This document shows positions 1,229-60,090 of a stretch of 64,000 nt of DNA, piece after piece. A program made the position numbers and the translations under genes. Positions within the stretch are counted from its first letter, which is position 1. The number at the start of each line of letters is the position of its first letter. The notes under the pieces are model-generated. The model saw nothing but the letters and a program-made list of their open reading frames with translations. It was not told where the DNA came from and ran no database searches. This DNA is from Octopus sinensis (lineage: Eukaryota): assembly GCF_006345805.1 (NCBI RefSeq), contig NW_021833114.1, forward strand, positions 17,235 through 81,234, in the 5' to 3' direction.

Positions 1229-1535
1229 GTCAATTGGTGGTAAATTGTGTTAATGATTGTGCTAATGTGGTTTCAACTATCAAAGTGTTTTTCAAAATCT
1301 GTTAATTGCACACTCTATTTAAGGTCGTGCGTCAATTGGTGGTAAATTGTGTTAATGATTGTGCTAATGTGGTTTCAACTATCAAAGTGGTTTTTCAAAA
1401 TCTGTTAATTGCACACTCTATTTAAGGTCGTGCGTCAATTGGTGGTAAATTGTGTTAATGATTGTGCTAATGTGGTTTCAACTATCAAAGTGGTTTTTCA
1501 AAATCTGTAATTGCACACTCTATTCAAAGTCGTGC
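1229..1535. repeat. Tandem repeat, about 3 copies of a 102-103 bp unit, inside the Helitron
   Basis: gtcaattggtggtaaattgtg recurs at 1229, 1331 and 1434. Confidence 0.95.
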
Positions 1536-1744: not shown

Positions 1745-2712
1745 GAAGGTTTTAATGGACCTCATCATGAATGTCGAGGACATTCGCGTTGTTCATTTTA
1801 ATCAAAATGCAGAAAATATTTTGATTTTTTGGGGGAAAGTTTTAAGGACTTCATCATGTAAGTCGAGGACATTGTAGTGTTCATTTTAACCAAAATGCAG
1901 AAAATTTTTTTTAATTTTTTTGGGGGGAAGGTTTTAAGAACTTCATCATGTAAGTTGAGGACAGTTGTAGTTGTTCATTTTAACCAAAATGCAGAAAATT
2001 TTTTTTTAATTTTTTTGGGGGGAAGGTTTTAAGGACTTCATCATGTAAGTCGAGGACATTTTAGTTGTTCATTTTAACCAAAATGCAGAAAATTTTTTTT
2101 TAATTTTTTTGGGGGGGAAGGTTTTAAGGACTCATCATGTAAGTCGAGGACATTGTAGTTGTTCATTTTAACCAAAATGCAGAATTTTTTTTTAATTTTT
2201 TTGGGGGGGAAGGTTTTAAGGACTTCATCATGTAAGTCGAGGACATTGTTAGTGTTCATTTTAACCAAAATGCAGAAAATTTTTTTTAATTTTTTTGGGG
2301 GGAAGGTTTTAAGGACTTCATTGTAAGTCGAGGACATTGTAGTTGTTCATTTAACAAAATGCAGAAAATTTTTTTTTAATTTTTTTGGGGGGAAGGTTTT
2401 AAGGACTTCATCGTAAGTCGAGGACATTGTAGTTGTTCATTTTAACCAAAATGCAGAAAATTTTTTTTTTTTTTAATTTTTTTGGGGGGGAAGGTTTAAG
2501 ACTTCATCATGTAAGTCGAGGACATTGTAGTTGTTCATTTTAACCAAAATGCAGAAAATTTTTTTTTAATTTTTTTGGGGGGAAGGTTTTAAGGACTTCA
2601 TCATGTAAGTCGAGGACATTGTAGTTGTTCATTTTACCAAAATGCAGAAAATTTTTTTTAATTTTTTTGGGGGGAAGGTTTTAAGGACCTCATCATGTAA
2701 GTCGAGGACATC
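1745..2712. repeat. Tandem repeat, about 10 copies of a ~93 bp unit with variable poly-T/poly-G tracts, inside the Helitron
   Basis: The gaggaca motif recurs at 1776, 1865, 1957, 2052, 2146, 2239, 2330, 2420, 2518, 2612 and 2704. Confidence 0.95.
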
Positions 2713-2740
2713 GTATTGCCAATTTGAAGTTGGTGTGCAA

Positions 2741-15661: not shown

Positions 15662-18046
15662 CTGTGACCGTCCATAGAATGGACACGCCGTTGAATGGAC
15701 ACTAGAGCATAAAAAGCAAAATAAATAGCAAATTCTATAAATAATTGATTGAAAATGCATTTTTTAATTAATTAAAATATTAATAGTTAATATTTTTAAT
15801 TATTTTTTTTAAGAGTGCAAAATGGGTTTTGTGAAACTGAAAGCTTCGGATCTAAAAATAAGCAAAGAAATTCAAGACGGCCAGTTAATTGATGAGCCGA
15901 ATGGGAATGTCGACCGTAAGAAAAGATTTCGATACAAAAATTTGGCCAAAAAATGATATTCAATGAAGATAAAGTGTATATTTTACACAAGGGCCTTCGG
16001 TTACGTTTTTTTGTGAGGACGAAGTGGAACTAAGGGAAAAAACCTTAGAGGTATTCAAAAAAGTTAAAAAAATTTTGGCGGAGCATAACTACAATCATTT
16101 CGGACGAGATAGATTGTTTAGTAAATTGCGAACATCTTATGTGACCGTCCATGGATTGTTTTTAGAATTTTTGCTAGAAATCTCACATCTTTAAGCTTTC
16201 TAAAAGTCTGTATCAAACACACCGCGGCCGAAGGCCGCATAGGGAACTGTATCAAATACGTCTTCAACGATTAGGGGTTTAGTCTAAGGCTGCATAAGAA
16301 ACAATACGTGTGCAGCAATTAAGGTTTGGTTAGGGTTCCCTTTAGAAATCTGTACTGGTCATCTCTAAAATTGCTGTTAGAATACCAACGTCTATTTTAT
16401 TTAATTTATTTATTAAAACACCAAGACCACGCTAAAAACCGAACAAATGTCACGTGATCCCGATGCACTCAACCAGGGACTTCATCCTCGCTCGGTGGTC
16501 TTTCCACGAGCCCACACAAGATCGCACAGGGCGGCAGGCCGTTTTTGGCGGAGCAGTCGCTGACGGGCCCAGGTTCAGCTTGATGAGGTCTTCCAGAGAG
16601 GCTGGACCGGGGCGTTGGCTATCAAGTGACCAACGATCGGTTAATCTGAGGGCCCTTTGTTGGGCCTCCTCGATTCGCCTCCTGTTGGACCACGATAGCC
16701 GCGGACCCCATGATCCGCAAGCGTACGCAACACAGGGTTCGAAGTACTGGCGGTAGATATTCGCCAGTACCGGGTGCGACCCGTTTTTCCAAATACCAGA
16801 TAGAGTTCGCAGAATGTTCAGTTTTTGTTCGCATTTGCGAAGGAGGTTGTCCACATGAGGGGAGAAACAGAGGTGCATGTCGAGGGTTACCCCTAGGACC
16901 GTCTGACTCCTGCAGAAGGGAACGGATATATTGTTCAGCTTTAAGTCGACAGACGTCCTTCCCAATCTTTTATCCGAGGTGAAGAGGGACTTGGCGGACT
17001 TCGCCGCGTTTACCACGAGCCGGTTGTCCGTCAGCCATAGGTTCAGCCGATCCAAGTTAGCTTGGAGCCTTTCAGAGGCCTTCTGGATGTCCCGGTCCCG
17101 TGAGGCTAGCACGATGTCGTCCGCGTATGAGAGAACAATGTCATTGTTGTCGAGGGAGTGAGGGAGGTCTTCCAAAAATAGGTTGAAGAGGGCCGGGGAT
17201 AAGGGGGATCCCTGAGGTACTCCGTTGGGTAGAAGACGAGATTTGGACTTCAGACCACCGAGGCACACCCTTCCCCTTCGTCCACTTAGGAAGTTGGTAA
17301 TCCATATTTTTAGCTTCAGAGGAAAGTCGGATTGGAATATCTTCCTTGAGAGGAGCTTCCTCGAGACGGAATCGAAGGCTTTATGGATGTCGACGGAGCA
17401 GAGCACGGTCTTTTGGTGCCTCGGTTTGCTGGAAAAACCGATATAGATGAAGTTTGACAAGGATTGGAGGTACGAAGACGTGGACTTCGCCTTCTTAAAA
17501 CCATGTTGAAAATGTCTTTCGGGTAAGAAAGCTTCTATTCTGCCAAGAACCAGTCTTTCTAGGATTTTTGACATCGAGCATAACAGGGAAATCGGCCTGA
17601 AAGAAGCCGGATCCCCTCTTGGTCTTCCAGGCTTCAGTATCGGTCTTATTAAGGCCTGTTTCCATAAAGCCGGAATTACGTTGTTGTTAATAGAATGGTT
17701 GAAGATTGCTGTTAGAAATCTGACACCTTCGACGCCAAGGTTTTTTAATAGGATCAAATAAATTTTACAAATAAATTCGATTTTATAACTATTAAAAAGT
17801 ATTATTTTAAAATGGTAAACCTCGAAATATAATAAACATTATGATTTTTAATCAATAATCGTAGAAAAAACGGTGTGGTTGGTTTTGTTAGCTCTCTTAT
17901 TTTCTCAAAACTCACCAAATTCATCGAAAATAGGCTCAAAATGGGACTTGGAAAAAATTAAGATATGTTTTATATGAGCAAAATTGAAATAAATGACATT
18001 TTGAAAGTGTCCACTCAAGGGCGTGTCCATTCAACGGACGGTGACA
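15662..18046. mobile_element. Non-autonomous element with pogo-like TIRs, containing a nested LINE
   Basis: Left ends (c)tgtgaccgtccatagaatggacacgcc at about 15662 and a partial copy at 16140; the right end gtgtccattcaacggacggtgaca|ta is their inverted repeat; flanked by TA. Confidence 0.55.
16394..17757 (-). mobile_element. I-group (Ingi/I-like) LINE, 5'-truncated, open RT frame with an internal C-terminal deletion
   Basis: 435-aa ORF with RPISLL, QHGF, DIHKAFDSV, GVPQGSPLSP, YADD, LGVTLD; (AAAT)-rich tail near 16394. Confidence 0.9.
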
Positions 18047-18096: not shown

Positions 18097-18960
18097 TTGT
18101 TGTCAATGGTTATGAACTACGAAACAAAATTAAAGATTGCTAAATTGATATCGAAGAAAAAATTATCTGAAAGACAGATAATTCAAAAATATAAAACTAG
18201 CAAAGGCATGATTTCACGAATAAAAAAAACAATTGTGCCTTTTCTTGAACAAGGAACTGTAAACACGGATGAAGATCCTATGCCTTATTGTGAGAAATCG
18301 AAATTTGGTGATCAAGTTTTTGAAATATTTCAGAAACTACGGGAAGATAAAGTTCCAATATCAGGTCCTTTCATAAAGAAAATCGCCTTATATACGGCTT
18401 CAAAGATTGGATTTGATTCCTTCAAAGCTTCAAACGGCTGGCTTGACAGATTCAAAAAGCGTCATGAACTGAGATTCAAATTAATTTGTGGAGAGAAAAA
18501 TTCATCTGACCTAACTTACATAAATGAGTTTTTTAAAATCCTTGACGAGAAAATTGCGGAATATGGAAGAGAAAATGTGTTTAATTGTGATGAAACAGCG
18601 CTTTATATAAAAAGGACACCGAGAAAGTCGTTTGTCGGAATAAATGACGATACTTTTGGCTTTAACCGTACTTCTTTGTTGCAATTCTATGGGAGAAAAA
18701 CTTGAGCCATTGATTGTTGGAAAATTTAAAAACCCTCGATGTCTCAAAAATTTCAATGTGAAAGATTTTGGAATTTCATACTCATCATCTAAAAATGCAT
18801 GGATGACTGGAAATATTTTTATGAGCTGGTTGACTCGGATAAATGAAAGATTTTATACAATCGACAGAAAAGTATTAATATTGCTTGATAATGCGGGATG
18901 TCATAAAACTATTGAATGCTAAAATATTGAGTTTTTATTTTTGCCAAAAAATACAACTGT
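18097..18960 (+). pseudogene. pogo/Tigger transposase pseudogene
   Basis: FKASNGWLDRFKKRH (CENP-B HTH), VFNCDET, AWMT, LLDNAGCH; frameshift near 18650. Confidence 0.88.
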
Positions 18961-20473: not shown

Positions 20474-22284
20474 CAGTTTACCCTCTATTGCTCGCCATTT
20501 CTATAACTCGCCACTTTTTTGGAAAAAATGCCATTTTTACTAAGGAAATTCCATTGCTCGCCACGTTTTAGTATTAAAAAATTAAAATTTATTATTAAAA
20601 AAAATAATTTTTTCAAATATTTATACCGCGTGTTTTTTTTTGTAACATGAGGAAGTGCTCAAGATTATTTTATGATCAAAAAAGAGAAATTATAAATTAT
20701 CTTATTGATAATTCTTCTCTAAGTCTAAGGCGTGTTTCAGAAATTTTTTCGTCGCGTTTCAAAAAATCAATTTCGAGACGTGCAATTAACGATCTTAAAT
20801 TGAACAAACAGAAGATTCTTGGAATTAATCCAATTTATGGGAGAAGTTCTCGTTTTTCGAAACTTAGATATTCAGCAATTGATTCTGAAATTATTGCCTG
20901 GATAGATTACATGGAATCTATTGGAGTTTGCCTCAATGATGAGATAATTTGTCGAAAGCAACTGAAATTGCTGCGTTAAATCTCTTCGAATTTAAAGCCA
21001 GTAAAGGATGGCTTGAAAAGTTCAAAAAAAGGCACAATGTAAAACTAAGAATTTTTCATGGTGAATTGGAATATACTGCGGATGAGTTCAAAGACCAAAT
21101 CGAAGACTTTAAAAAAATTATCTCTTCTAAAATAAATGAATATGGTTCAGAAAATGTTTATAATGCCGACGAAACCGGCGTATTTTACAAGACCATTCCA
21201 TCAAAAAGTGTCTGCAGGAAACGCCAACCAGGACAAAAATTACTTAAAGATAGGTTTAACATTTTTAGCTAATTTTCAGATTTTCATTAATGCTTTGGGC
21301 AAATATGACTGGATCCGATAAAAGAACCCCTTTGATGATCGGGCAGTTTAAGAAACCAAGGTGTTTTAAAAACTTGAACGTTGATGAATATTTACAATAC
21401 CGGAATTCTTCAAAGGCTTGGATGAACATGGAAATATTTAACGAATGGTTGTATAATTGGAACAAGACTCTCAAACAAAAACAAAAAAAGATACTTTTGG
21501 TTGTAGACCATTGTCCTTCACATAGAATAACAATCGAATTAAGTGATTCAAATCATTCAAAATCATTCAAATCTCATTTCAACAAATTTAAATTTAAACA
21601 TATAATTGAACAAATAACGCAACTATTGAATGCTATAAAAAATTAACCCTGAAAGATGCAGTCTTATTTTCTTATCTAGCCTGGAAAGGTGTGTCAGTGG
21701 ATAAAATATCAAAATGTTTTCAGCACGCCAAATGGGAAAACAGAATTGAAGAACCTATTATGGGAGACCATAAAATAAAAAATTTCGAACAAATTATAGA
21801 AAAATTAATGATCACAGATCCCATAAAAGAGAAGGAGTTTATAGACTTTACGTACTCTGAAAATGACGAACTTCATGAATTTGTTCAAAACAATAACTAT
21901 GAAAATAACGATGAAAATGCAATTTTAGACAGTTCAATTACTGAAGATTGTGAAAGAAACAACTGTATTACACATCGAGATGCGATAAAATGTATTTTTC
22001 ACATGACGATAATTTTGATGTGAATATGCTAGAAAGTTTTTTAAAAATGCAAAAAAATATAGAGAAAAGATCATACAAAAAAACTATAAATGATTGCTTA
22101 CTTAAAATTTTGGTTTTTTAAATAAATGTTTCGGCTATTTATTTAAATGTTTAGATAGTTAAAAATTATAGAAATTTTTTGTTGATAGAAAATAGGATAT
22201 TGATTATTTCTCTTACTCGCCAAATTCTCTTAGTCGCCAATTTTGGCTTGGTCCCAAAAATGGCGAGCAATAGAGGGAAGACTT
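20474..22284 (+). mobile_element. pogo/Tigger transposon with decayed transposase and a 26-nt intron
   Basis: TA|CAGTTTACCCTCTATTGCTCGCCA left TIR and matching right TIR ending at 22284|TA; FKASKGWLEKFKKRH, YNADET, KAWMN, VVDHCPSH. Confidence 0.9.
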
Positions 22285-23191: not shown

Positions 23192-24280
23192 ATGCCGAAA
23201 TGGCTTGGAAGTAGCAAAAAAAAGTCGAAAAACAATTATGATGTAATCTACGGTGAATTATGTGTGATTGGGTAATGAAGATTAATTCTAAACACCAGGA
23301 GTGGCCTTGAGATTGGGGAGTCATTGCGACGTCGCCCTCGACAAACATTGTTCAGAAGGAACGTGGCAAACGGAATTAATGGAGAAATGTTATTAGAAAG
23401 AACTAAAATTGTAAATGAAGGTAGTGACTGTGTAGCGTAACAAAAACTATTCGGTGAAATTTAACGAGGGAATTTGGGAATACGAGGCAGACGATTCCCT
23501 GGACATGTTCCAGATCGGTCGGTCACCAGGAGAGACAAACGACATTGTTATGGAAGATAATTTGACTGTATCTCGTTTTGCTTGTCGTCTGCTCGTCTCC
23601 CGCGACCCTCCTCACACTACGAAATTATATGCGGGAGGATTTAACGATGAACACTTCCTCACACTTAACCAATCTTTCCAAAGACTCGGGTCGTGGGATG
23701 GATTCACGACCAACGGAGTTTTCATCAGGCATGCCGGGCCTGCTCAGGAATGGAAGGAAGTGTCCGTAAGAGGTGGTGTCTTTCCTCATCGAACGATTCG
23801 AACGTCAATGGAACCTTGTGGGGACAACACTCTCCACGATGGCTCACTCATTGATTTGGGTGGCCTCACTTTTATTTGGAGGAATCCCTTCGCACGACTC
23901 ACTACTCCCGTACTGATTAATTAATTATTTTAGGATCCACAATCACTCGCATTACCGACCACTTTTTCCCATGTATTCTCTGGATGTGGTCATGTCTCCA
24001 ATGAAGATAAATGCCAGGTGTGTCCGATTATCAGTCCTATCCGTCCACTTCTTCTTGGAACTCAGACTTGTTTCTATGTCGATGATAATAAACTGACACA
24101 CTTTTTTACAGCATGTGGACATGTCACCACTCACCTGACTGCAAAGTTATAGTTCCGTGATAAAACTTTAGGTTCTGGGCTAATACTAAATTACCATGTG
24201 AACAAGACTTTAGGGCTGTTTGTCCTTTTTGTCGTACTCCATTAGAGGGCCCTGCATTTCTTTCTCTTATACTTTCTTGA
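23192..24280 (+). CDS. PELI: Pellino E3 ubiquitin ligase (about 328 aa, 4 introns)
   Basis: YGELCVIG, DMFQIGRS, VSRFACRL, DGFTTNGV, LHDGSLIDLGG, and C-terminal CGHV...FYVD...CGHV...CPFC RING; introns of 27, 25, 24 and 26 nt. Confidence 0.93.
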
Positions 24281-24728
24281 CCAAATTATCATTATATAAA
24301 CAATTTTTATAGTTTAATGATAGTTGTTAAACTTACCATATAAGTTATTCCAAACGGAACTTTTATAATAAAATTCTGAAAAAATTAAGGATGAGCATTC
24401 CAAAATGTATAAGACAGTTGAGCGTTTTTGTTTACATTAAAGCCTAGCTAAAACTTTGTCTACTTAAAAGTTAAATCCTTAATTTTAAATTCACGCGTAA
24501 ACTAATGGACACTTTGAAATCTTGGAAATTAGAATAGATTAATAAAATAATTGAGAAACCAAAATATTTTAAAAATTTTGTCAATAATAATTATCAACAA
24601 ACCGTTGCTGTTAAACGCCGTAAAAATCAATAATCTGTGCCGTAAATTGATTAATCTCCGTCAGATTTAAAAATACTTAGTTATTATGTGAGAGAAAACT
24701 TGCAAGAAAACTTGCAGACATCAAGTTT

Positions 24729-38780: not shown

Positions 38781-39514
38781 ATTAAAATCATTCCTGGCAC
38801 CTCATAAAAATTTTTCGCTCCCTAAATCGGGAAGAACTTCTTTACAATGAGAACAGACCTTAGATTGATTCCAGAAAGAGTTTTGATCGTACATATAAGT
38901 AAATAATCGGGTCAAAAGAAGTCATTTCCATATCTTAGGCAAGTCATTGACGACTTGACGTCAACATGCGGATTATCCTAGGCTTTGAAGATATCAGACT
39001 CTTTTTGTACTATGATCAACCCTTTCACATTAGCTTGGGTAGCACATGGTCCCAAGGTGGGTATCAAGTGATTTTTCAACAGCAAGGATGACGTCGTATA
39101 TGTGAAGAGATAGTATCAGCTAATCCAATAATATTGGCTGATATTGAATTAGTGATTTTTGATATAAATAATGTCACAGGCCGGAAGCGTTACGGCGCCG
39201 GAAGCGTTACACATTTCAATATTCAATAAATAAGTTAATATTAAATATTTAGTAGTAAACAAGGTATTTTAAATTTAAAAATATACTTTTTACTCTTTCG
39301 ACGTCAACTATTTGTAAATCACTCCGAGGCAGAAAACCAACCAGACATAATTATCAGAACGGCGTCGCTACGTAAGTACAATGTATTCAATAATTGGCTA
39401 GCCATTTAACACTATTAATAATTTGTTAAATTAATTAAAGATTTAAAAATCAACAAAAATTATATTTATTACGCACTTTACAAAAGTTAAGTATTTGTAG
39501 GGTGCATTCCGATT

Positions 39515-40616
39515 TTAATTAGTCGGTAGATGTGAATTCCCTCCATTTTTTTCTCCCCTTTCACTTTCTAGCGTACATATGTCGCCTTCCCTCTCGATGA
39601 TCGTGTACTTTTCCATGTGTAATCCGTCATATAATGGATATTGCCTTACATTCGCATCATTTTCTTGTCTACATAAATTACATGTTTAAATATTGTAACC
39701 TAATTATTACCTCCTCTCCTATGCATAAAGGTTCTTCGTCGTACTTCCATCTTCGTCTCTGTGCCATTTTTTCCACAGCTTGTAAAATATTTGAGTATGC
39801 TTCTTGTCTTGAATTCGTTAGATCATCAAATTCTTCAGTGACACAGTAGAGTTGTTCTAATTCTTCATCACTCGTTCTTACTGGAAATTGCATTCCCATA
39901 AAGATGTAGAATGGGATATTCCGTGTAGTAGAATGAACAGTATTGTTGTAGTCAAATATGATGTCTTTGACTTTTTGAAATAGAGATGTAATTTCAGCGG
40001 AGCTTTTTGAATAAGCTAACTCGACCATGGCATATTTCGAAAAAGAATCAACAATAACAAGAATCTAATCGTTTAAGAGAAGGCAAATACCCAATTAAAT
40101 GAGTCATTAATTTCCGAATATCTTCGGAGATCGACCAGATCGGCGATATACCGGTCTCTACTTCTTGCAATTATCGGCGTAATAGGTGGCTTTGTTGCTA
40201 ATGCCTTTTTAGACTAAAAATATAGGAAAAATCGTTACCTGACAAGGGACACATTGGGAAATGACTTGATTTATTTCGTTTCTTATAATTCCATAGTAGC
40301 GTGATCTGAGCTTAGAAAATAAGCGATCTTTACCAAAGTGATTAATATTGTGTTCAACCTATTGATATTGTATTCAAATACATACATCAACAAATTTGCG
40401 TCTCAATTCAGTTTCATCCGTACAAAAAAAACGTAATTTTAGATTATTGTGGCAAATGAATGGCGTTTCGCCTTCAAAAACAAATGACATAGCCAATTTT
40501 GCTAGCCTAAATCTTTTCATCTTAGACGATGAATCCTCCGAAAGAAGATCACAGAGGTTTTCTTGAAATTCTTTGATTTTCTGTAGGGATTCTTTTGTTA
40601 TTTGCACTAAACGCAT
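39515..40616 (-). CDS. Ginger integrase, spliced (4 introns), catalytic core partly deleted
   Basis: Introns 40359-40385, 40214-40238, 40065-40090, 39669-39699 join MRLVQ...KFVD|VEHNINHFGKDRL...CVPCQ|SKK...RYIADLVDLRRY...FNW|ILVIVDSFSKY... into a 330-aa frame. Confidence 0.75.
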
Positions 40617-40765
40617 TATACACACTTAATAAAATGATTAAAATTTATTCATAATTTATTAATATTTATAGATATTTGTTCTTTTCAAATGAAATTATTA
40701 TTGTTTTACGTATTTTTAATTTTTTTTGTTTACATGCGTAACGCTTTAATTTTTTTTGTTTACAT

Positions 40766-42692
40766 ACACTCTGATCTCCCTGCCCTCATCAAAGAACAAA
40801 AGGAGCTAAGACTACAACTGGAAAACACATCTGATCCGAAGAAGAAACAAATCTTACAGAATAGACGTTCATCTACCCAGAAAAAAATCAAAATGTTGAA
40901 CAAGACAAACTTCACTAACAAACTCGACTTAATAGCTGCAGGAATTGAACAGCTAAAGGACTCTTCAAAAATGTTTACGGCAATCCGCCTACTCAACAGG
41001 AAAAAACAAACTAACAAACTCAAAATCCATGACAGCAATGGAAGATTCATCACAAATCCCAAAGAGCAGGCTGAATATATAGCCTCGTATTTCGAGAGTA
41101 TATTAACCGCTCACGGAGAAATATCCGATTACACCAGCGGATACACCACTCATCTCAGCCTACCTATCACCACCGGTGAAGTATCAACTGCAATAGCCAA
41201 ACTTAAAAATGGCCGCTCCTCTGGACCGGATGGAATAAATTCAGAACTGTTTAAATACGGACCGCCTGCACTAACAGACAAACTGGCGGAGCTACTCAAT
41301 GTATGTTTATGAAAAAGGAATTCCTCGGTCTTGATTCCGGATTATTAATACCGATCCAAAAGCCTAACAAGCAGGCTGGGCCTGTCGAAAATCTACGCCC
41401 TATAATCTTGCTAAACACCTTACGGAAACTTTTGGGATTAGTTACACTGAACCGAATAAGAGAACAAGTGGACAACTATCTATCCCCGAGTCATAGTGGA
41501 TTTAGGACAGGAAGATCCACCGCCGATGCTGTCTGGGCCCACAAGTGGTACTGCGCTATCACCCAGAGATACAAAAGTGCAACAACAGTCCTGGGAATAG
41601 ACCTGTCTAGGGCCTTTGACACGGTACGCCGTGGTCTACTCCTCAAAATACTGGAACAATTCCTGGACCCTGACTCTGTCAATATGATAAGAGTACTACT
41701 ATCGAACACAAAGCTCAAGGTGCGGGTCGGCACGGCGTTTTCCCGTGAATTCACGTGCAACGTCGGTACCCCTCAGGGAGACGCCCTCTCGCCGTTGCTA
41801 TTCGTGATCTATCTGGAGACGGCACTACGAGACCTTCGAAAATTCTATGCTGGCAATATCGTCGAAATTGTATATGCAGATGACGTCGACTTCGTGTCAG
41901 ACGACAAATCGGCCTTACTTCGACTCCTTGAAGTGGCACCTGCTGAGCTGAACAGATGGTTCCTTAAAATGAACGTTGGAAAAACCGACATCGTTGAAAT
42001 CATGAGGATGGAGAGCAGCTCAAGTGAAGCCTGGCGCAAAACGAACAAACTCGGTTCTCTACTTGGGGACGGCCATGATATTGTCAGAAGAAAGGCTCTC
42101 GCTTGGGCCACGATGAACAAGATAAAGAAAGAGTGGATCGGCAAACGACGACTCTGTACGTCACTTCGTCTGAGGATGTATGAAGCCTTTGTCAAACCAA
42201 TCCTGACATATAATTCGGCGACCTGGGGAATGTCTAGTACTGAACAACGTGGACTCGATTCTTTTCACCGCAGGCAACTTAGATCCCTACTGGGATTGAA
42301 CTGGCCTATAAGAATCAACCAGGAATCGCTATACAATAGATGCAGAACTGGCCCTCTGAGTGTGGAAATCGTCAATATGCGGTGGAGGTTATTTGGCCAT
42401 ATTCTACGAATGGACATGCTTGCCCCAGCTAACATAGCAATGGAGGGCTACTTCCTGAAAGAGGGATCGAGCTTCCGTGGACGTCCACGTGTTACGCTGC
42501 CGGAAACACTTGACGGAGACCTGAAATGTGTGAAGAAAAGGCTAAGGAGTGGTGAGGATCTGGACGAGCTGAGGAAACTCGCTCACGACAGAGGAGGTTG
42601 GAGGAGGCTGGTTCAAAGGATTGTTTTTAATGCTGCACGAGTAAAATTATAACTAATATGATTCTACGTATGTTGCAAATAATAATAATAAT
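40766..42692 (+). mobile_element. RTE-clade LINE, 5'-truncated, one frameshift, inserted in the Ginger TIR
   Basis: GRSSGPDGI, LRPIILL, SGFRTGRST, DLSRAFD, GTPQGDALSP, YADD, WRLFGHILR; (AAT)5 tail; gcgtaacgct duplicated at 40736-40745 and 42693-42702. Confidence 0.92.
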
Positions 42693-43249
42693 GCGTAACG
42701 CTTCCGGCGCCGTAACGCTTCCGGACTGCGACAAAGCATTATACACACTTAATAAAATGATTAAAATTTATTCATAATTTATTAATATTTATAGATATTT
42801 GTTCTTTTCAAATGAAATTATTATTGTTTTACGTATTTTTAATTTTTTTTGTTTACATGCGTAACGCTTCCGGCGCCGTAACGCTTCCGGACTGCGACAA
42901 ATAATGCTAACATTTTCAAACCTTCAAGTCACGAACTTTATGTTATCAACATTTTAAATATGCAAGAGTTGATTTACATAAAGTACATTTCGTGAGGACA
43001 ATTAAGAATTATCTTTTGGTTATTTTAAACACAATATCTATCTAACGAACTCTTCAAATATTTTCGTATAGTTCTTTATGATTGATCCTGAACGATAAAT
43101 ATAAAATCTTTCACATCTAACGATTCAAATTTTCAAATTTATTAGTTTAAAATTTATCTAAATCGTGTATTGATAAAGTCATTTAGTATTTATTGATATA
43201 ATCGTGTTTGTTTGAGCGGATAATCTATTGTGTGAAGTTATAACTCAAA

Positions 43250-46410: not shown

Positions 46411-47181
46411 TGTCACATGCCCCACGCGTTACCATGCCCCACGCGTTACCATTGCTCTAAATTTCTAAAATTTCAATTAAAAATATTTAGACGATTGAAA
46501 TATATTTACTTATTAATTTAAAAATTAATAATATTATGGATTTTTATTTTTTCAATGCTTAACCATTAAAATTAAAAAACAATAAATTAAGCATGCTGTT
46601 TATTGTCGGGGTTAGGGCTAAGGTAAAGATTAGGGTTAGGGTAAAGGTTAGGGTAAAGGTTGGGGTTAGGGTTAGGGTAAAGGTTAGGGTAAAGGTTGGG
46701 GTTAGGGTTAGGGTAAAGGTTAGGGCAAAGGTTGGGGTTAGGGTTTGAAAAAATTTGAAAGTGCTTGTTGTGATACTGTCACGATCAAATCAATCTTTCT
46801 TATAACCGCGTTAATGTAGAATTTTCGAATGGAGATACAAAGATAGTTTACATGAAAAGAATCAAATAAAGGACAAAATAATTAATTTTAATTTTATAAA
46901 CTATCAAATTATGTTGCTTTAAGCTTTTCACACAATTCACATCATTTAAAATATGTTTTAATGTCCGTAGCAGTCATAATGTTTTGTTGTATTAAAAATA
47001 TTATTTAATTTATTTATTTTAAAGCATCTTTTAGTATATCATTAAATTATACTCTAATTAACTTTATATATAATTTGAATTTTATTGCATTATGATTGAT
47101 TTTTTAATTTTTCTTAAAAATTAAAAATCATATTTCTCAGAGGTAACGAGTGGGGCATAGTAATCGCTGAGGCATGTGACA
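46411..47181. mobile_element. Ginger-like MITE
   Basis: Imperfect ~39-bp TIRs tgtcacatgccccacgcgttac... / ...gcatgtgaca; 5-bp TSD tatta (46406-46410 and 47182-47186). Confidence 0.85.
46608..46745 (+). repeat. Interstitial telomere-like array inside the MITE
   Basis: Three 36-bp units (TTAGGG)(TTAGGG)(TAAAGG)(TTAGGG)(TAAAGG)(TTGGGG) at 46630-46737 (one T>C variant). Confidence 0.95.
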
Positions 47182-49859: not shown

Positions 49860-50370
49860 TTTATCGAAAATCTCCATCTAAAAATGGACATCCTGGTCGA
49901 GACAAACTGCTTTTTCTTCTTAAAGATACTGTTTATAAATTTTGTCGAAGTGAGATTATGTCAGTTCTTAAATCATGCTGCTAATGTTAGGTGAGAAAGA
50001 TTATGAACACCAGACCGGAATTAAGCCCATACGGACAATGGGAACGAATTTGTCTAACAACGAAAGGATTTCCCGATTGTGTGATGAGTATAGGATAAAG
50101 CATGTGACAGGTAGTACAAGGTGCCCTTGGGTGCAGGGGCAGGTAGAAAGACTAAACCAATCCTTGAAATATGTTGTCCTCCATCTGTTTGTCTGAGAAC
50201 CTCAACTATAAATGAATTGCAATAATATAAATGTTTATTGAACCATAAATGTCTTTAAAATTGGGGACAATGTTCTGCGAAGAGTTAGAACCGACAATAA
50301 TAAAGGAACGCGGATGCGTTCTCTAAATGAACATATGGATACGAGAATATATTATGTCAAAGGATTCTCA
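49860..50370 (+). mobile_element. Ginger-type integrase fragments
   Basis: HPGRDKL...LKSCC*C, HTDNGNEF, HVTGSTRCPWVQGQVERLNQSLK. Confidence 0.75.
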
Positions 50371-55361: not shown

Positions 55362-57666
55362 CAGTGTTCCCTCTAAGCTGCGCGCGTGCGCGGCCGCGCA
55401 GCAGTTTGCACCTTGCTGCGCAGCGAAATTTTTTTCTGCGCAGTAGAAAGTATAATATTAAAAATTGCTATTTTTTTTAATTTTTTATATGAATTTATAT
55501 ATTCTTATTTTCATTTCAAAACGAAAACGTGTCTATAATATTGATATGAGACTTAAGAAAAATTCTCCTTCTTTTAAGCCGGAATGGTTGATAGAGTACG
55601 TCGAAACCTTAACACCAGATTTAAAAATTCCCCAACATGTGCAACTGGGTGATATTTTTAGTTTTTCCGAAGACTGCGGAGTTGTTTGTAAAATATGTGG
55701 CGACGCTAAAGCGACTTGTGATTTTGCGAGTGGAAAAACCTGGGATATATGGAAATTGGATTATCTGAAGAGACATATTACCCATAAAATTCATTCAGAT
55801 TCAATAATAAAATTAAGAAGAATTCGAGCAGGAACTGGAATCAGCTGCTTGCTCACAGAGTCTAAGGATGACCGACAGATGAGATTCAAAATGAGTGATC
55901 GTGCACGAAGTAAGATTGAAAAAGTGAAAATTCTCATTGACAATGTTATTTTGGCTCTCTCCATGAATGCTTCATTACTTTCTGTTATGAATATACATGA
56001 TCATATGGCAAAATATGTAGAACTTCCTGATAGCTGGCGAAGTAAAAATTATGCATTTGAGTTTGTTGAATGCATCGACTACGTGGTCAAAGAGATATGT
56101 ATGCAGGAAATTAGAGAGTCTCGGTTCCATACACTCATTGTGGACGAAAGCACAGATATATCCGTAACCAAAATGCTTATTATATATATTAAATATCGTC
56201 CTACGGGGACAAATTATCACAAAACAGTTTTTTCTAGCATAATGAAACTTACAAGTTGTGACAGTAAATCTATTTTCATTGCAATCAAGAAATTCTACAT
56301 GACAAACAATCTTGATTTTCAAAAGATGGTAATGTTTACATCAGATGGGGCATCCGTTATGCTAGGGAGAAGAAATGGCGTGGCATCACTGATCCGTGCT
56401 GAGGTTCCTCATCTTACTGAACAACATTGCGTCGTTCACAGACAAGATCTAGGGATCGATGATGCATGGAAAAAAAATAATCTTGTGAAAAATATTGAAA
56501 TATTACTCCGGACTGTTTATACTGTTTTCAGTCGATCAAGTATAAAAAAAGCTGCATTTCAGGACCTGGCTAATGTTGTTGTTGAAGATGTCGTTTCATT
56601 TAAGCCACTAAATGAAGTGAGATGGATGTCTCGGCATTTTACTGTTAAAGCTTTGATAAAAAACTACACAATTTTAATTGAATATTTCAAGAAACAGGTT
56701 GAAGATGATAATGATCCGATTGCAAAATATTGCTTAAAACAACTTCAAAATCCTCTTATTCATGTTGCTTTAACTGCCTTAAATGAAATTTTGGCTGAAT
56801 TAGCAGATTTGTGCACAGTCTTCCAAAGAAGCTGTATATCGACCATAGAAGCTGTACAGTTTGCCAGAGCAAAAATTTCGAAGCTGAAATCTCAATATTT
56901 GGATGGAAATGAAATTTACTGGAGTGACAGTGTGAAGATGTTGTTATCAACAACTGGTTATGGAGATACAAATACAGATGAAATCCTATGCTTTATCGAG
57001 CATGTTTATCTGCATTTACAAGAAAGATTTCCAGCTGACGAATTAAGAGAATGGGTAGCATTTGACACTCAAGCAATTCAAAATCAGACAAACTTTGAAT
57101 TTGGAAAAGAGGAGATAATTAAATTAGCGAAAAAATATGAAAATTTACTCTCTTCAGAAGTCCCACTCATAAAACTGCAGTCGGAATATACAGATCTCAA
57201 GTTTATTTTAAAAGAAAAACTGCACTCTGGTGCTTTGAAAACATTTGAAGATGTAATTTACTATATACTAGCGGAGAAAAAATTTTCAGCCACTGCAACA
57301 TTTGTGGATATTTGTGGCACATTTCAAGCGTCGAGTGCTGATGCTGAACGTGGATTTAGTTTGATGAACTGTATCAAAACTAAACTACGTAATAGACTTG
57401 AGATTGACCATTTGGAGATGATCATGCGAATCAAGTTCTATTTAACAAGTGGGAATACAGTGGATCTTGATCGAGTATACAAATTTTGGATACAAAATAA
57501 AAACAGAAGAGAATATCCAATTGACTAGACCTATTTTTTTAACCATTGGTTTTTTAATTGTAAAATTTCCCCCCCCCCAAAAATTTTTTGCACACGTCAC
57601 TTTATAACGCTGCACAATGCAATGTGCCCAGCGCGCATAGCTACCACTCGCTTAGAGGGAACACTG
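55362..57666 (+). mobile_element. Full-length hAT transposon (ZNF862/Tip100-like)
   Basis: 16-bp perfect TIRs CAGTGTTCCCTCTAAG; 8-bp TSD gttacggc on both sides. Confidence 0.95.
55546..57528 (+). CDS. Intact hAT transposase (660 aa from ATG 55546)
   Basis: Zinc-finger C..C...H...H; IVDESTD, TSDGAS, CVVH, RW, SSADAERGFS; no stops, no introns. Confidence 0.92.
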   Translation: MRLKKNSPSFKPEWLIEYVETLTPDLKIPQHVQLGDIFSFSEDCGVVCKICGDAKATCDFASGKTWDIWKLDYLKRHITHKIHSDSIIKLRRIRAGTGISCLLTESKDDRQMRFKMSDRARSKIEKVKILIDNVILALSMNASLLSVMNIHDHMAKYVELPDSWRSKNYAFEFVECIDYVVKEICMQEIRESRFHTLIVDESTDISVTKMLIIYIKYRPTGTNYHKTVFSSIMKLTSCDSKSIFIAIKKFYMTNNLDFQKMVMFTSDGASVMLGRRNGVASLIRAEVPHLTEQHCVVHRQDLGIDDAWKKNNLVKNIEILLRTVYTVFSRSSIKKAAFQDLANVVVEDVVSFKPLNEVRWMSRHFTVKALIKNYTILIEYFKKQVEDDNDPIAKYCLKQLQNPLIHVALTALNEILAELADLCTVFQRSCISTIEAVQFARAKISKLKSQYLDGNEIYWSDSVKMLLSTTGYGDTNTDEILCFIEHVYLHLQERFPADELREWVAFDTQAIQNQTNFEFGKEEIIKLAKKYENLLSSEVPLIKLQSEYTDLKFILKEKLHSGALKTFEDVIYYILAEKKFSATATFVDICGTFQASSADAERGFSLMNCIKTKLRNRLEIDHLEMIMRIKFYLTSGNTVDLDRVYKFWIQNKNRREYPID

Positions 57667-57689: not shown

Positions 57690-60090
57690 GCAAGTACTGA
57701 TTGCTTGAGGAAAAAAACCCGGTCGGATTCAAAGGAGTCTTTGATCACGGAATTGAACCAATATCAATTAAACAAAAAAATTACGATCGAGAATGGGACC
57801 GTGCACAAATCCTGATACTTATAACGAGTTAAGAAGAGAAAAAAATCGCATGTTTAAGAGATTAGAAGGAAAAGAAATCTATGTTAAGAAAATTGACGAA
57901 CGTGTCAGTGAAATTGCACAGAACGCAAATGTTTCGTGCTGTTCGCCTTTTGTAGAAAGCAGCTCAAAACCTACAAATATTTGTATTCATAACAGCCTAG
58001 GAAGAACTGTTTTGGACAATAAAGAAAAGACTGAAATTATTGTTAAACATTTTTCATGACTTCTGAATGGAAATGATTCCACAGACGTGAAACCATTCGA
58101 CAAATCACCAAGAAGTCTGAATTTACCGAACTTCACTAAGAAAACTAACTTGGCTATCAAAAAATCAAACAAAAACAGGGCAACTGAATTAGACAACATA
58201 CAGGGAGAAAGCCGTTAATACAAAGATTTTCAATATGGTATTTGAAGCACACTCGCCTTTGAAGCTTGGTGATTGAATTTTAATCCCTTTTCATAAACCA
58301 GGAAAGAGCAAGAGACCGCTAAAATGATTTCAAAATACTCTGGTTAAAAATATTCAGTGCTTTTGATACTATTGACAAGAAAAAATTGTTTCTGAAAAAA
58401 ATTCCTAACGAATTTAAGAACTTTAATAAAGAAAAGACCGAACACATAAGAATCACAAGAAAATTAGAATATATTAATGAAACATGGAGGGAAAAAGGAA
58501 ATTGGGGTTCTTACTTGCTGATAGTGAGTACATGATGTATAGAAGAGTCCTAGCCACTGCAATGTATAAGAAATGTAAAAAATATGGAGTCGGCCAAAAC
58601 TAAACAAAAAAACCTACAAATGAGGCTATGCAACTCATGCATAAAGCCAGCACTTATGTACAATTCGGGTATACGAAAAGTCACAGAATCAAGAAAATGG
58701 ACATTTCATCGAAGGCTATCACGCAATTTAAGCGGCCTAGATTGCCCAAAAAAGAGATTATATACAATAACTTGTACTCTATGACCCAATCGGTTCCAAT
58801 AATCACTGAAATTATCAAATCAAGATGGAGGCTTTTTTGGCATAAACATTCCCGCAAACATGATAATGAACTTATGATAATGAACAATTACTTTAACAAC
58901 GAAAAAAAAGATTGTTCAGAAAAAGACGTACAGTCACCCATCCTGTTGCTCTAAATCAGACGTCACCAAACTACGGCCCGCGGGCCGGATCCGGCCCGCG
59001 ACAACATTTTATCCGGCCCGCGCACTATTTCGAGATATTCAATTAATACCTTAATAATTAACTTAAATAAAAACTTTAATTAAAAAATTAAACTATTTTG
59101 CAAGATTTAATTCGAAAAAAAACTTATCAGCATTAACGTTAAATTTTTCTTTGTTGCTATGTCTAATATGAAAAGAAAGGTTGACCGCGAATGCCGTGTA
59201 TTCAATAAATTATGGGAATTGAAGTATTTTTTTGCGAAAGATGAATTAAAGCAGAAAGCTTATTGTTTAATATGCCACGAACATCTCTCTGTTATGAAGG
59301 ACGTCAGTTTTCACACTTTTCTTGTTTTAAAAGTTTTTGTGAGGCAAACTGTAATGAGATCGACATTACTTTCCAAATTGGAATTATCAAAGAATTAAAA
59401 CATCATTTTTTACATAAGTTTTCTGAACTTGACAAAATTGAAAGCGATATAATTTTGTTCGAAAATCCATTTTCTTGTAATGTTGAAAATGTTCAACATG
59501 AATTACAATTAGAAGTTATTGACTTACAATCAAATGAACAGCTCAAAGATTGTCACAGACGGACCAAACTCGCTGAGTTCTACGAATATCTCAAGGATGA
59601 TGAGTTTCCGAGACTAAAGAATTTTGCGATAAAGATGATTTCTATATTTGGCACAACTTACCAATGTGAGCAAACGTTTTCGAGGATGAAATATGTTAAG
59701 TCTGCCCATCGTGCAAGATTGACTGACGGACACTTAAAATCAATTCTCATGATAGGATGCAGCAATTTAAAACCAAATATTGATGAACTTATCAAAAAAA
59801 GATCACAGTTCCATAGCTCTCATTAAAATTTTTGTTTACTTTATTTTTATTTAAATTAGTTTTTATTGTAAAAAACACACTTATGAATTTCTAGTAAAAT
59901 TATAATCCTATGCACGTGCTCCGGCCCGCGTTCATTGTGTTGGGGTCAATCCGGCCCGCGAGTGCAAAAAGTTTGGTGACCCCTGCTCTAAATAATGATC
60001 TTAATAAAATTTTTAGAAAACTCAAATGTGCGGGCGACCTAGAAGAACTGCGAGCAAATGCGAGTAACAAATACCTATGGAGACGCTAGA
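57690..60090 (+). mobile_element. Degenerate RTE LINE, interrupted by a hAT
   Basis: CIHNSLGRTVLDNKEKTE, AFDTID, SRWRLF, and after the hAT LNNDLNK...DLEELR; colinear with 40766-42692. Confidence 0.7.
58957..59985 (+). mobile_element. Internally deleted Buster/SPIN-like (GTF2IRD2-like) hAT
   Basis: TIRs cagacgtcaccaaact / agtttggtgacccctg; TSD ctctaaat; N-term KRKVDRECRVF..W...CLIC fused to C-term FGTTYQCEQTFSRMK. Confidence 0.92.

Follow-up and report, generated by a model that had tools for sequence, protein, structure and literature searches.

Apparent host-sized micro-introns in the integrase gene of a Ginger2/KRBA2-like transposon from a probable dicyemid genome

The stretch of DNA analyzed here (64,000 nt, referred to as the window) is repeat-rich and of animal type, uses the standard genetic code and carries several LINE reverse transcriptase (RT) sequences, pogo- and hAT-like genes, and host genes encoding Pellino, a KLF-type zinc-finger protein and a CFAP57-like WD40 protein. 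The integrase gene considered below lies on the minus strand, its frame opening with an ATG at 40616, closing with a TAA at 39517-39515 and interrupted four times in between (Table 1). Removal of four GT-AG segments, which lie exactly at the sites reported in the first-pass annotation, restores the single open reading frame (ORF) that it had proposed; at the composition of the gene, 330 open codons would be met by chance with a probability of about 4e-12. The first three junctions do fall between codons, as had been stated, and the introns have an AT content of 75% versus 64% in the exons. On the spliced protein, Pfam Integrase_H2C2 (PF17921) matches residues 69-121 (E 9.2e-8), a span that crosses junction 1, while neither Pfam rve nor a Pfam protease domain is matched. 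The earlier claim that splicing joins the zinc domain to the catalytic region thus stands for the zinc domain, the catalytic region being incomplete by 76 codons. The alignment column homologous to D142 (D143 in the numbering of the L001 paralog) is invariant in family alignment A1, and D142 is presumed to be the first catalytic Asp, a reading that draws on alignment to PFV integrase and on what is generally known of the integrase family. A PDB sequence search with the integrase gave marginal matches only (PFV integrase, E 0.58).

Table 1. Features of the transposon and related features of the window. Slashes in sequences mark splice junctions; descending coordinates are given as recorded.
Feature	Position	Strand	Remarks
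Decayed family fragment	3815-2979	-	intron 5 present, intron at site 3 absent
KLF-type gene intron	14861-14837 (25 nt)		restores HTG/EKPY
Truncated family fragment	15822-16149	+	96% copy of L001 subfamily, with L001's poly-T frameshift
Pellino introns	23272-23298 (27 nt), 23910-23933 (24 nt), 24146-24171 (26 nt)		restored motifs
CFAP57-like WD40 gene introns	37506-37482 (25 nt), 37219-37193 (27 nt)		restored motifs
TSD AATAA, left copy	39167-39171	.	identical 5-mer directly outside both TIRs
TIR at 3' end of gene	39172-39219	+	begins TGTCACAGGCCGGAAGCGTTAC; two CCGGAAGCGTTAC units inside
Integrase gene	39515-40616	-	five exons, four introns; 330-codon spliced ORF, internally deleted
Integrase exons	40616-40386, 40358-40239, 40213-40091, 40064-39700, 39668-39515	-
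Intron 4	39669-39699	-	31 nt, phase 2, GTTACA...TGTAG; separates GEEVIIR from QENDAN
Internal deletion junction	39968-39969	-	...SLFQKV meets KDIIFDYNN...
Intron 3	40065-40090	-	26 nt, phase 0, GTATTT...ATTAG; separates NDSFNW from ILVIVDSFSKY
D142 codon (RYIADLVD)	40139-40141	-	sole residue of DDE triad kept in window copy
Intron 2	40214-40238	-	25 nt, phase 0, GTAACG...TTTAG; immediately 3' of CVPCQ
H2C2 zinc-binding motif H80-x3-H84-x28-C113-x2-C116	40242-40352	-	all in exon 2; Pfam PF17921, regex
Intron 1	40359-40385	-	27 nt, phase 0, GTATGT...AATAG; 3 codons before first His of H2C2
5' region copy adjoining gene (137 nt)	40610-40746	-	99% identical to 42733-42869
LINE (non-LTR), 5'-truncated	40766-42690	+	inserted antisense into 5' TIR of element
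Tandem duplicate (166 nt)	42691-42856	-	direct repeats D1, D2; 166-nt period, 99-100% identity
Outer 5' TIR	42852-42899	-	begins TGTCGCAGTCCGGAAGCGTTAC in gene orientation
TSD AATAA, right copy	42900-42904	.
Family fragment	49886-50169	+	intronless P0024/P0046 lineage

The gene lies within a transposon bounded by terminal inverted repeats (TIRs) and a target site duplication (TSD), as had been recognized. The TIR arms measure 44-48 nt, with 38 of the 42 terminal bases complementary and 90% agreement over 48-nt arms; the termini read TGTCA at 39172 and TGTCG at 42899 (reverse complement), and the CCGGAAGCGTTAC unit is confined, within the 64-kb window, to three TIR copies. The AATAA TSD is known from one copy only, and a chance match of this kind in AT-rich DNA has a probability of about 0.002-0.01. 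No direct long terminal repeats were found around the element. Its 5' end has been rearranged. The copy of the 5' region that adjoins the gene extends from the start codon and first coding bases (40616-40610) across the 5' UTR/promoter region into the 5' TIR, of which it includes the inner 13 nt. The LINE has an RT ORF at 41303-42652 (Pfam RVT_1, E 9e-33) and an (AAT)n tail that runs to 42690, lacks the endonuclease part by comparison with P0002, and is associated with a target duplication, GCGTAACGC, at 40738-40746 and 42693-42701 and with an extra local duplication of 21 nt at its 5' junction (40745-40765). The 166-nt duplicate consists of an inner, full copy of the 5' TIR (42691-42733), AA, and a second copy of the 5' UTR region; it arose later than the insertion of the element, because the duplicated unit takes in 2 flank bases. 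The first-pass annotation is silent on the LINE and this duplication, as it is on the apparent loss of activity, the uniqueness of intron 4 and the fifth intron described below.

The internal deletion takes out 76 codons (FYYVGPP..HTDNGKE..QGQVER..) together with a fifth family intron, about 261 nt in all. The missing segment (..FYYVGPPRILHTDNGKEF...APWIQGQVERLNQS...) is present in all eight relatives, and at the deletion site the L001 paralog (Octopus sinensis assembly, VCDQ01012456.1, 12681-14100) is 261 nt longer than the window copy; the reconstructed L001 protein matches Pfam rve at E 1.9e-14. A mis-called large intron or exon skipping was considered and rejected, there being no GT-AG at the breakpoints in the L001 sequence, and the 76-codon loss is treated as an ordinary internal deletion. 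Two residues of the DDE triad, the second D and the E, fall in the deleted codons; with these gone no active integrase could be encoded, and the window copy is predicted to be a catalytically dead, non-autonomous derivative, which might at best be mobilized in trans via its outer TIRs. Alternatively, the 330-codon product could have a function of its own, either as a truncated protein that represses or competes with transposition or, after domestication, in binding DNA. The spliced codons contain no stop or frameshift, the product would keep an H2C2 finger, an N-terminal core and a C-terminal SH3-like domain even though the catalytic D and E are gone, the deletion comprises an exact number of codons and one whole intron, and the 137-nt upstream region is still joined to the gene. 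An in-frame outcome, however, has a prior of one in three, and an open frame is expected of any young copy. Moreover, neither an ortholog nor a second copy of the deleted form was found in the window or among the fetched loci, with no sign of amplification, and the element retains its transposon ends and TSD and has since been struck by a LINE. A functional product is accordingly considered improbable, and a dead copy is the preferred reading.

Restoration of an ORF is by itself weak evidence for introns, because 37 candidate GT..AG segments of 20-35 nt occur in the gene and an alternative intron 2 restores the frame equally well; homology is the decisive test. Naive ORF-joining recovered introns 1, 3 and 4 as previously annotated, and was rejected as intron evidence because it produced a spurious 25-nt alternative at intron 2 and implausible paths of 18-57 nt in the host genes; it was replaced by junctions guided by motifs and homology. 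Relatives with continuous ORFs were aligned with MAFFT (P0010, P0012, P0022, P0014, L002, P0024, and P0025), among them P0010, a full-length protein of 413 aa encoded by a continuous ORF, and L002, an 852-nt contig that forms one continuous reading frame except for two TAG codons. All seven are gapless at every one of the four junctions that they span, as had been anticipated for an alignment to KRBA2-like integrases, and the fifth junction, taken from L001, is likewise gapless against them.

Intron 1 holds in-frame stops, and L001 has an intron of different sequence and identical length at the same codon position; the site is gapless in the continuous-ORF relatives that span it (P0010, P0022, P0014, P0024, and P0025), FVD/VEHNINHFG aligning with TVSNLHNTCHFG. 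At the codon of intron 2 L001 likewise has a GT-AG intron, which is missing from the L003 copy, and L002, P0010 and other relatives continue through CxxCQSK with no gap (CVPCQ/SKKALATKPP against CIQCQSKRLMTTKPQ). The codon of intron 3 is occupied by an intron in L001 and by a 27-nt GT-AG intron in L003, while intronless relatives pass it without a gap (NDSFNW/ILVIVDS against NSGFGWLLVCVDS). Intron 4 is the only canonical, host-sized GT-AG segment that links the frame to the downstream C-terminal ORF of 51 codons (probability of being open, about 0.017). The sequence at its junction, VIIR/QENDAN, aligns without a gap to VFLRNDTDAN in P0010 and VFLKKDTDF in P0012, an alignment gap of 2 residues lying a few residues downstream. 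Neither L001 nor L003 has this intron, and its restriction to the window copy makes it less secure than the other three; it is probably a true intron, but could be a fortuitous GT-AG insertion.

L001 and the window copy share 69% nucleotide identity over an HSP that covers introns 2 and 3, and their amino acid identity ranges from 49 to 58% with the region considered. Saturation has been reached at synonymous sites (pS 0.78) while pN is 0.30, with 77, 63, and 134 differences at first, second, and third codon positions, which indicates that the integrase protein has been under purifying selection throughout a long divergence. The introns, by contrast with the exons, have unrelated interiors and lengths of 27/27, 25/26, and 26/32 nt (window/L001), with GT and AG kept. 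Because L001 retains introns 1-3 at the same codons with their sequence and length changed, these segments are taken to be genuine spliceosomal introns of the U2-type GT-AG class; as they stayed put while the protein was under selection, splicing would have been required, and would be expected to take place in vivo. The segments might instead be short insertions or frameshifting debris that a decaying pseudogene has accumulated, the frame being restored by coincidence in AT-rich DNA. The abundance of GT..AG candidates, the frame-restoring 25-nt alternative at intron 2, the fact that the window copy is dead in any case, and the restriction of intron 4 to that copy could all be cited in its favor, but coincidence would have to account for three segments at identical codons in a paralog diverged to synonymous saturation, for the retention of GT and AG alongside exon differences that are mostly third-position, for four junctions that are gapless against intronless homologs, and for segment sizes that match those of the host introns. 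Debris is thus very unlikely, and introns 1-3 are treated as genuine in what follows.

Comparison with other genomic copies, as the first-pass annotation had envisaged, reveals that intron content differs within the family. A fifth family intron, located in QGQVER/LNQS, measures 33 nt in L001, 26 nt in L003, and 26 nt in the decayed window copy (2979-2954). In the L003 copy (P0038), introns 3 and 5 are present and sites 2 and 4 are empty, and the 15822-16149 fragment has intron 1 with its acceptor mutated to TG. Introns 3 and 5 are common to most intron-bearing copies, 1 and 2 are limited to a sub-clade and 4 to a single branch, and introns are lacking both in the closest outgroups and in another Ginger2 lineage of this genome. 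In a neighbor-joining tree, a rough one built from partial sequences and without support values, the intron-bearing copies form one group, in which L003 is basal, next to an intronless group of P0010, P0012, and L002. The tree fits a stepwise gain, in which introns 3 and 5 would have come first, then 1 and 2, and then 4; the lack of introns in the outgroups and the differences in intron content between subfamilies likewise fit the earlier suggestion of intron gain, or long residence, in the host. That a Ginger2-like lineage gained micro-introns one after another while resident in a dicyemid genome is put forward tentatively, at somewhat less than even probability. To our knowledge, spliceosomal intron gains are otherwise very rare in animals. 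If the proposal is true, the many dated copies of the family record recent gains in an animal, under the regime of shortest introns known in Metazoa, and the origin of micro-introns becomes directly testable.

The six host introns of the window, fixed by restored conserved motifs, measure 24-27 nt, and the transposon introns (25-31 nt) are for this reason described as host-sized, in agreement with what had been noted from the sequence at the outset. Repeats of the window, both satellites and transposons, are 88-96% identical to repeats on contigs of the O. sinensis assembly. On one contig of that assembly (VCDQ01000492.1), family members lie beside a clathrin heavy-chain gene whose C-terminal coding pieces are only 3-35 nt apart. 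Dicyema japonicum, which comes from the renal sacs of O. sinensis, has a GC content of 36.7%, 49% repeats and many LINEs (PMC6736024), and dicyemid spliceosomal introns are ultra-short (Lu et al., 2019; PMC6736024), a property found among animals in dicyemids and myxobolid myxozoans only (PMC13644364). A dicyemid, a parasite of the octopus kidney, is the most likely host, because repeats are shared with the O. sinensis assembly, VCDQ01000492.1 bears micro-introns and D. japonicum lives in O. sinensis. A ciliate, suggested by intron size, was rejected in view of the long standard-code ORFs and metazoan-type genes (Pellino, and KLF with HTGEKPY linkers). A myxozoan, from the other animal group with introns below 30 nt, is less likely given the 88-96% identical repeats in the octopus assembly. 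A protein search with the N-terminus of the CFAP57-like protein matched only proteins without names, at 49% identity or less, and was uninformative as to the host; scans of the window for Rfam families and tRNAs were negative. A number of contigs and proteins that bear the label Octopus sinensis appear to be dicyemid.

The close homologs recovered by profile search (E up to about 1e-36) are all rve proteins of 170-740 aa, some with H2C2, and contain no RT or RNase H domains. Relatives that match the family profile at E 1e-72 carry the NCBI name 'KRAB-A domain-containing protein 2(-like)', and P0024 and P0025 are named in their sources 'KRBA2-like [Octopus sinensis]' and 'KRBA2 [Dictyocoela muelleri]'. 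A full DDE core is present in L001, P0001, P0010, and other relatives, and GPY/F and YPYY motifs in none of the 12 family sequences examined. The intronless P0010 and P0024 are encoded in units of 2.27 and 3.29 kb that end in TGTCAC...GTGACA, a TGTCAC terminus that they have in common with the window element. The L005 relative (2.27 kb) is a complete TIR-to-TIR unit with an integrase ORF as its only content. No TSD was found around L004 or L005, and the L001 copy has no recognizable ends, neither a TIR motif nor a convincing inverted repeat. By these features and by the source names of its relatives, the element fits a Ginger2/KRBA2-like cut-and-paste DNA transposon; the Ginger identity first proposed would hold, narrowed to Ginger2 rather than Ginger1 because of the TIRs with TGTCA/TGTCG termini, the 5-bp TSD, the H2C2 domain, the lack of GPY/F or YPYY, and the stand-alone KRBA2-like relatives. 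That the gene is instead what remains of the integrase of a Gypsy-type LTR retrotransposon, or belongs to the neighboring RT element, is scarcely credible: an RT ORF does lie 700 nt away, one relative is named 'Pro-Pol polyprotein, partial', and Ginger and Gypsy integrases are similar and have TG..CA termini in common (consulted portions of PMC2836005), but that ORF runs antisense to the integrase gene and belongs to a 5'-truncated LINE, which has an (AAT)n tail and, inside the TIR, a target duplication of its own, the repeats that bound the element are inverted and not direct, GPY/F and, in close relatives, RT and RNase H domains are missing, and L005 contains the integrase ORF alone.

The evidence taken together makes it very probable that window positions 39167-42904 represent one Ginger2/KRBA2-like insertion, that its integrase gene has true host-sized introns, that the copy is dead, and that the host is a dicyemid. 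Such an insertion would comprise 44-48 bp TIRs with TGTNR ends, a 5-bp AT-rich TSD and one integrase gene, from whose transcript the host spliceosome must presumably excise micro-introns to yield an H2C2-DDE integrase. How such an element would move follows from what is established for DDE integrases and for cut-and-paste transposition. Transcription of a full-length family member would be followed by host splicing of its roughly five micro-introns; the resulting H2C2-DDE integrase would bind TIRs that end in TGTCAC and cut the element out, and reinsertion via a short staggered cut would generate the TSD. In the window copy, an internal deletion would have removed the second Asp, the Glu and the fifth intron, leaving a dead, non-autonomous copy whose 5' end was also hit by the 5'-truncated LINE and the 166-nt tandem duplication.

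A gene belonging to a mobile element can thus carry introns at the host minimum of about 25 nt and keep them through long divergence, so that their splicing would appear to be accurate enough to sustain a selfish gene that depends on it. The subfamilies, with their differing intron content, offer a small natural series for the study of intron gain and loss in dicyemids. There is also a practical consequence, in that gene finders that ignore introns below 30 nt break or read through such genes, as in the NCBI models P0002 and P0038. That Ginger transposases can have introns, that animals harbor Ginger2 elements and that dicyemids have micro-introns was known already, and conceptually the advance is modest; literature searches returned no account of Ginger in dicyemids. 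The locus is best seen as a tidy example of a mobile element that has adopted the tiny introns of its host, not as a new type of element.

Among described elements, the closest parallels are to be found in Ginger2/Tdd. According to the portions of the original description that were consulted (Bao, Kapitonov & Jurka 2010; PMC2836005), these are cut-and-paste elements with TIRs of about 45-300 bp, TGTNR...YNACA termini and AT-rich targets, and are defined by being without YPYY and GPY/F; consulted portions of a second source (PMC3575427) derive from Ginger2 the integrase domain of KRBA2, and that of SCAND3 as well. The window element resembles them in its apparent mode of transposition, TIR range, TGTNR termini and AT-rich target, and its family in having a single H2C2 and DDE integrase gene with no GPY/F or YPYY. 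TSDs are given there as 4 bp in described metazoan families and as 5 bp in TDD-4 and TDD-5, so that the 5-bp TSD seen here, in a single copy, is like those of TDD-4/5 and unlike those of metazoan Ginger2. The introns of the window family (25-33 nt) are far below any described for Ginger in that text, which mentions introns for Ginger1 only. Ginger1, and the derived GIN1 and GIN2, are similar to the window element in their Gypsy-like integrase, H2C2 and TGTNR termini, and the same text bears out the statement that some Ginger elements have introns: 1-4 GT-AG introns occur in some Ginger1 transposase genes, at positions conserved in the derived host genes (PMC2836005). Ginger1 differs, however, in its 4-bp CCGG/CCGT TSDs, its YPYY and GPY/F motifs and its C-terminal OTU or Ulp1 domains, and was rejected here, since the TSD is AATAA, YPYY and GPY/F are missing and no Pfam protease domain is matched. 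GingerRoot, with a 6-bp GC-rich TSD, TA...TA termini and TIRs of 100-150 bp (PMC6839031), was likewise rejected for an element with a 5-bp TSD of A and T only, TG..CA termini and TIRs of 44-48 bp.

As a defective copy, the window element is comparable to Ds, derived from Ac, and KP, derived from the P element, in which ends and TSD are kept, catalytic residues are deleted and transposase is needed in trans; unlike such derivatives, the deleted form is represented by one copy in the window and by none among the fetched loci. The introns themselves are most like the ultra-short introns of dicyemids and myxobolids, which are GT-AG, about 22-38 nt long and AT-rich (PMC6736024; PMC13644364). Those reports concern host genes, whereas here the introns reside in the gene of a mobile element, and which of them are present varies between its subfamilies.

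Several contigs deposited as Octopus sinensis under GCA_006345805.1 look like dicyemid parasite DNA. These are VCDQ01012456.1, which carries the paralogous integrase copy L001 and has repeats in common with the window at 88-96% identity; VCDQ01000492.1 (loci L003 and L004), which bears the Ginger2-like transposon family together with a clathrin heavy-chain gene split by micro-introns; and VCDQ01001336.1 (L007), implicated only because the family member P0046 is encoded there. If the contigs are dicyemid, the O. sinensis label on the NCBI integrase-family proteins P0002, P0024, P0038, and P0046 is probably a mis-attribution. Public gene models also mishandle the micro-introns. In P0038 (L003, 10001-10513), an in-frame, stop-free intron of 27 nt is translated as VFISSIKSQ and the model continues into intron 5, a family intron deleted in the main window copy. 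P0002 (L001, 10001-19228) combines a LINE endonuclease and an integrase exon in one model, which extends into intron 3.

Three host genes in the window have the exon structure given in the table below. The top database match of the CFAP57-like protein is an unnamed protein with only 49% identity, which indicates that the window host is fast-evolving or unsampled.

Features of the window, with strand where assigned
Feature	Position (nt)	Strand	Remarks
94-nt satellite	1745-2715		10.4 copies
103-nt satellite	1229-1535		3 copies
Integrase fragment	3815-2954	-	Decayed; lacks intron 3, retains 26-nt intron 5
KLF/Sp-type C2H2 host gene	15249-14600	-	Split by 24-27 nt GT-AG introns
Integrase fragment	15822-16149	+	96% copy of the L001 subfamily; intron 1 present
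DNA-transposon gene	18097-18705	+	
DNA-transposon gene	20647-22023	+	
Pellino-like host gene	23201-24300	+	Split by 24-27 nt GT-AG introns
CFAP57-like WD40 host gene	37784-35700	-	Split by 24-27 nt GT-AG introns
5'-truncated LINE in the transposon's 5' TIR	within 40610-42901	antisense	RT ORF 41303-42652; (AAT)n tail
Telomere-like interstitial array, degenerate	46610-46745		(GGTTAG/GGTTAGGGTAAA)n; about 136 nt
Integrase fragment	49886-50169	+	Internal deletion; second, intronless lineage (P0024/P0046 type)
DNA-transposon gene	55465-57528	+	
DNA-transposon gene	59263-59826	+	

Besides the main copy, the window contains three more Ginger2-like integrase fragments, and in the one from the L001 subfamily the acceptor of intron 1 has mutated to TG. 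The 5' end of the main transposon has been remodeled: the LINE inserted there is associated with a target duplication, GCGTAACGC, and with an additional local duplication of 21 nt at its 5' junction, and the terminal 166 nt of the transposon, comprising 5' UTR region, TIR, and 2 flank bases, are tandemly duplicated at 99-100% identity. Of the two satellites, the 94-nt unit also forms long arrays in L001 (78-92% identity). Among the further DNA-transposon genes, an uninterrupted ORF of 687 aa has no Pfam match and looks hAT/ZBED-like, and another ORF encodes a hAT dimerisation domain. There are also pogo/Tc5-like HTH and DDE_1 pieces; gaps of 45-311 nt lie between their ORF fragments, and these pieces may contain micro-introns as well.

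The intronless metagenomic relative L002 (ENA ERZ17174941) contains two in-frame TAG codons (positions 73-75 and 778-780), one aligned to a Gln of the window protein and the other adjoining a Gln, with homology persisting beyond both. These codons could be the result of decay, with CAG changed to TAG, or the host may translate TAG as Gln. The named integrase relatives in the homologue hit list belong to the microsporidia Dictyocoela, Pseudoloma, and Nosema and to dicyemid-like contigs; all of their hosts are intracellular or internal parasites, and horizontal transfer among parasites is conceivable.
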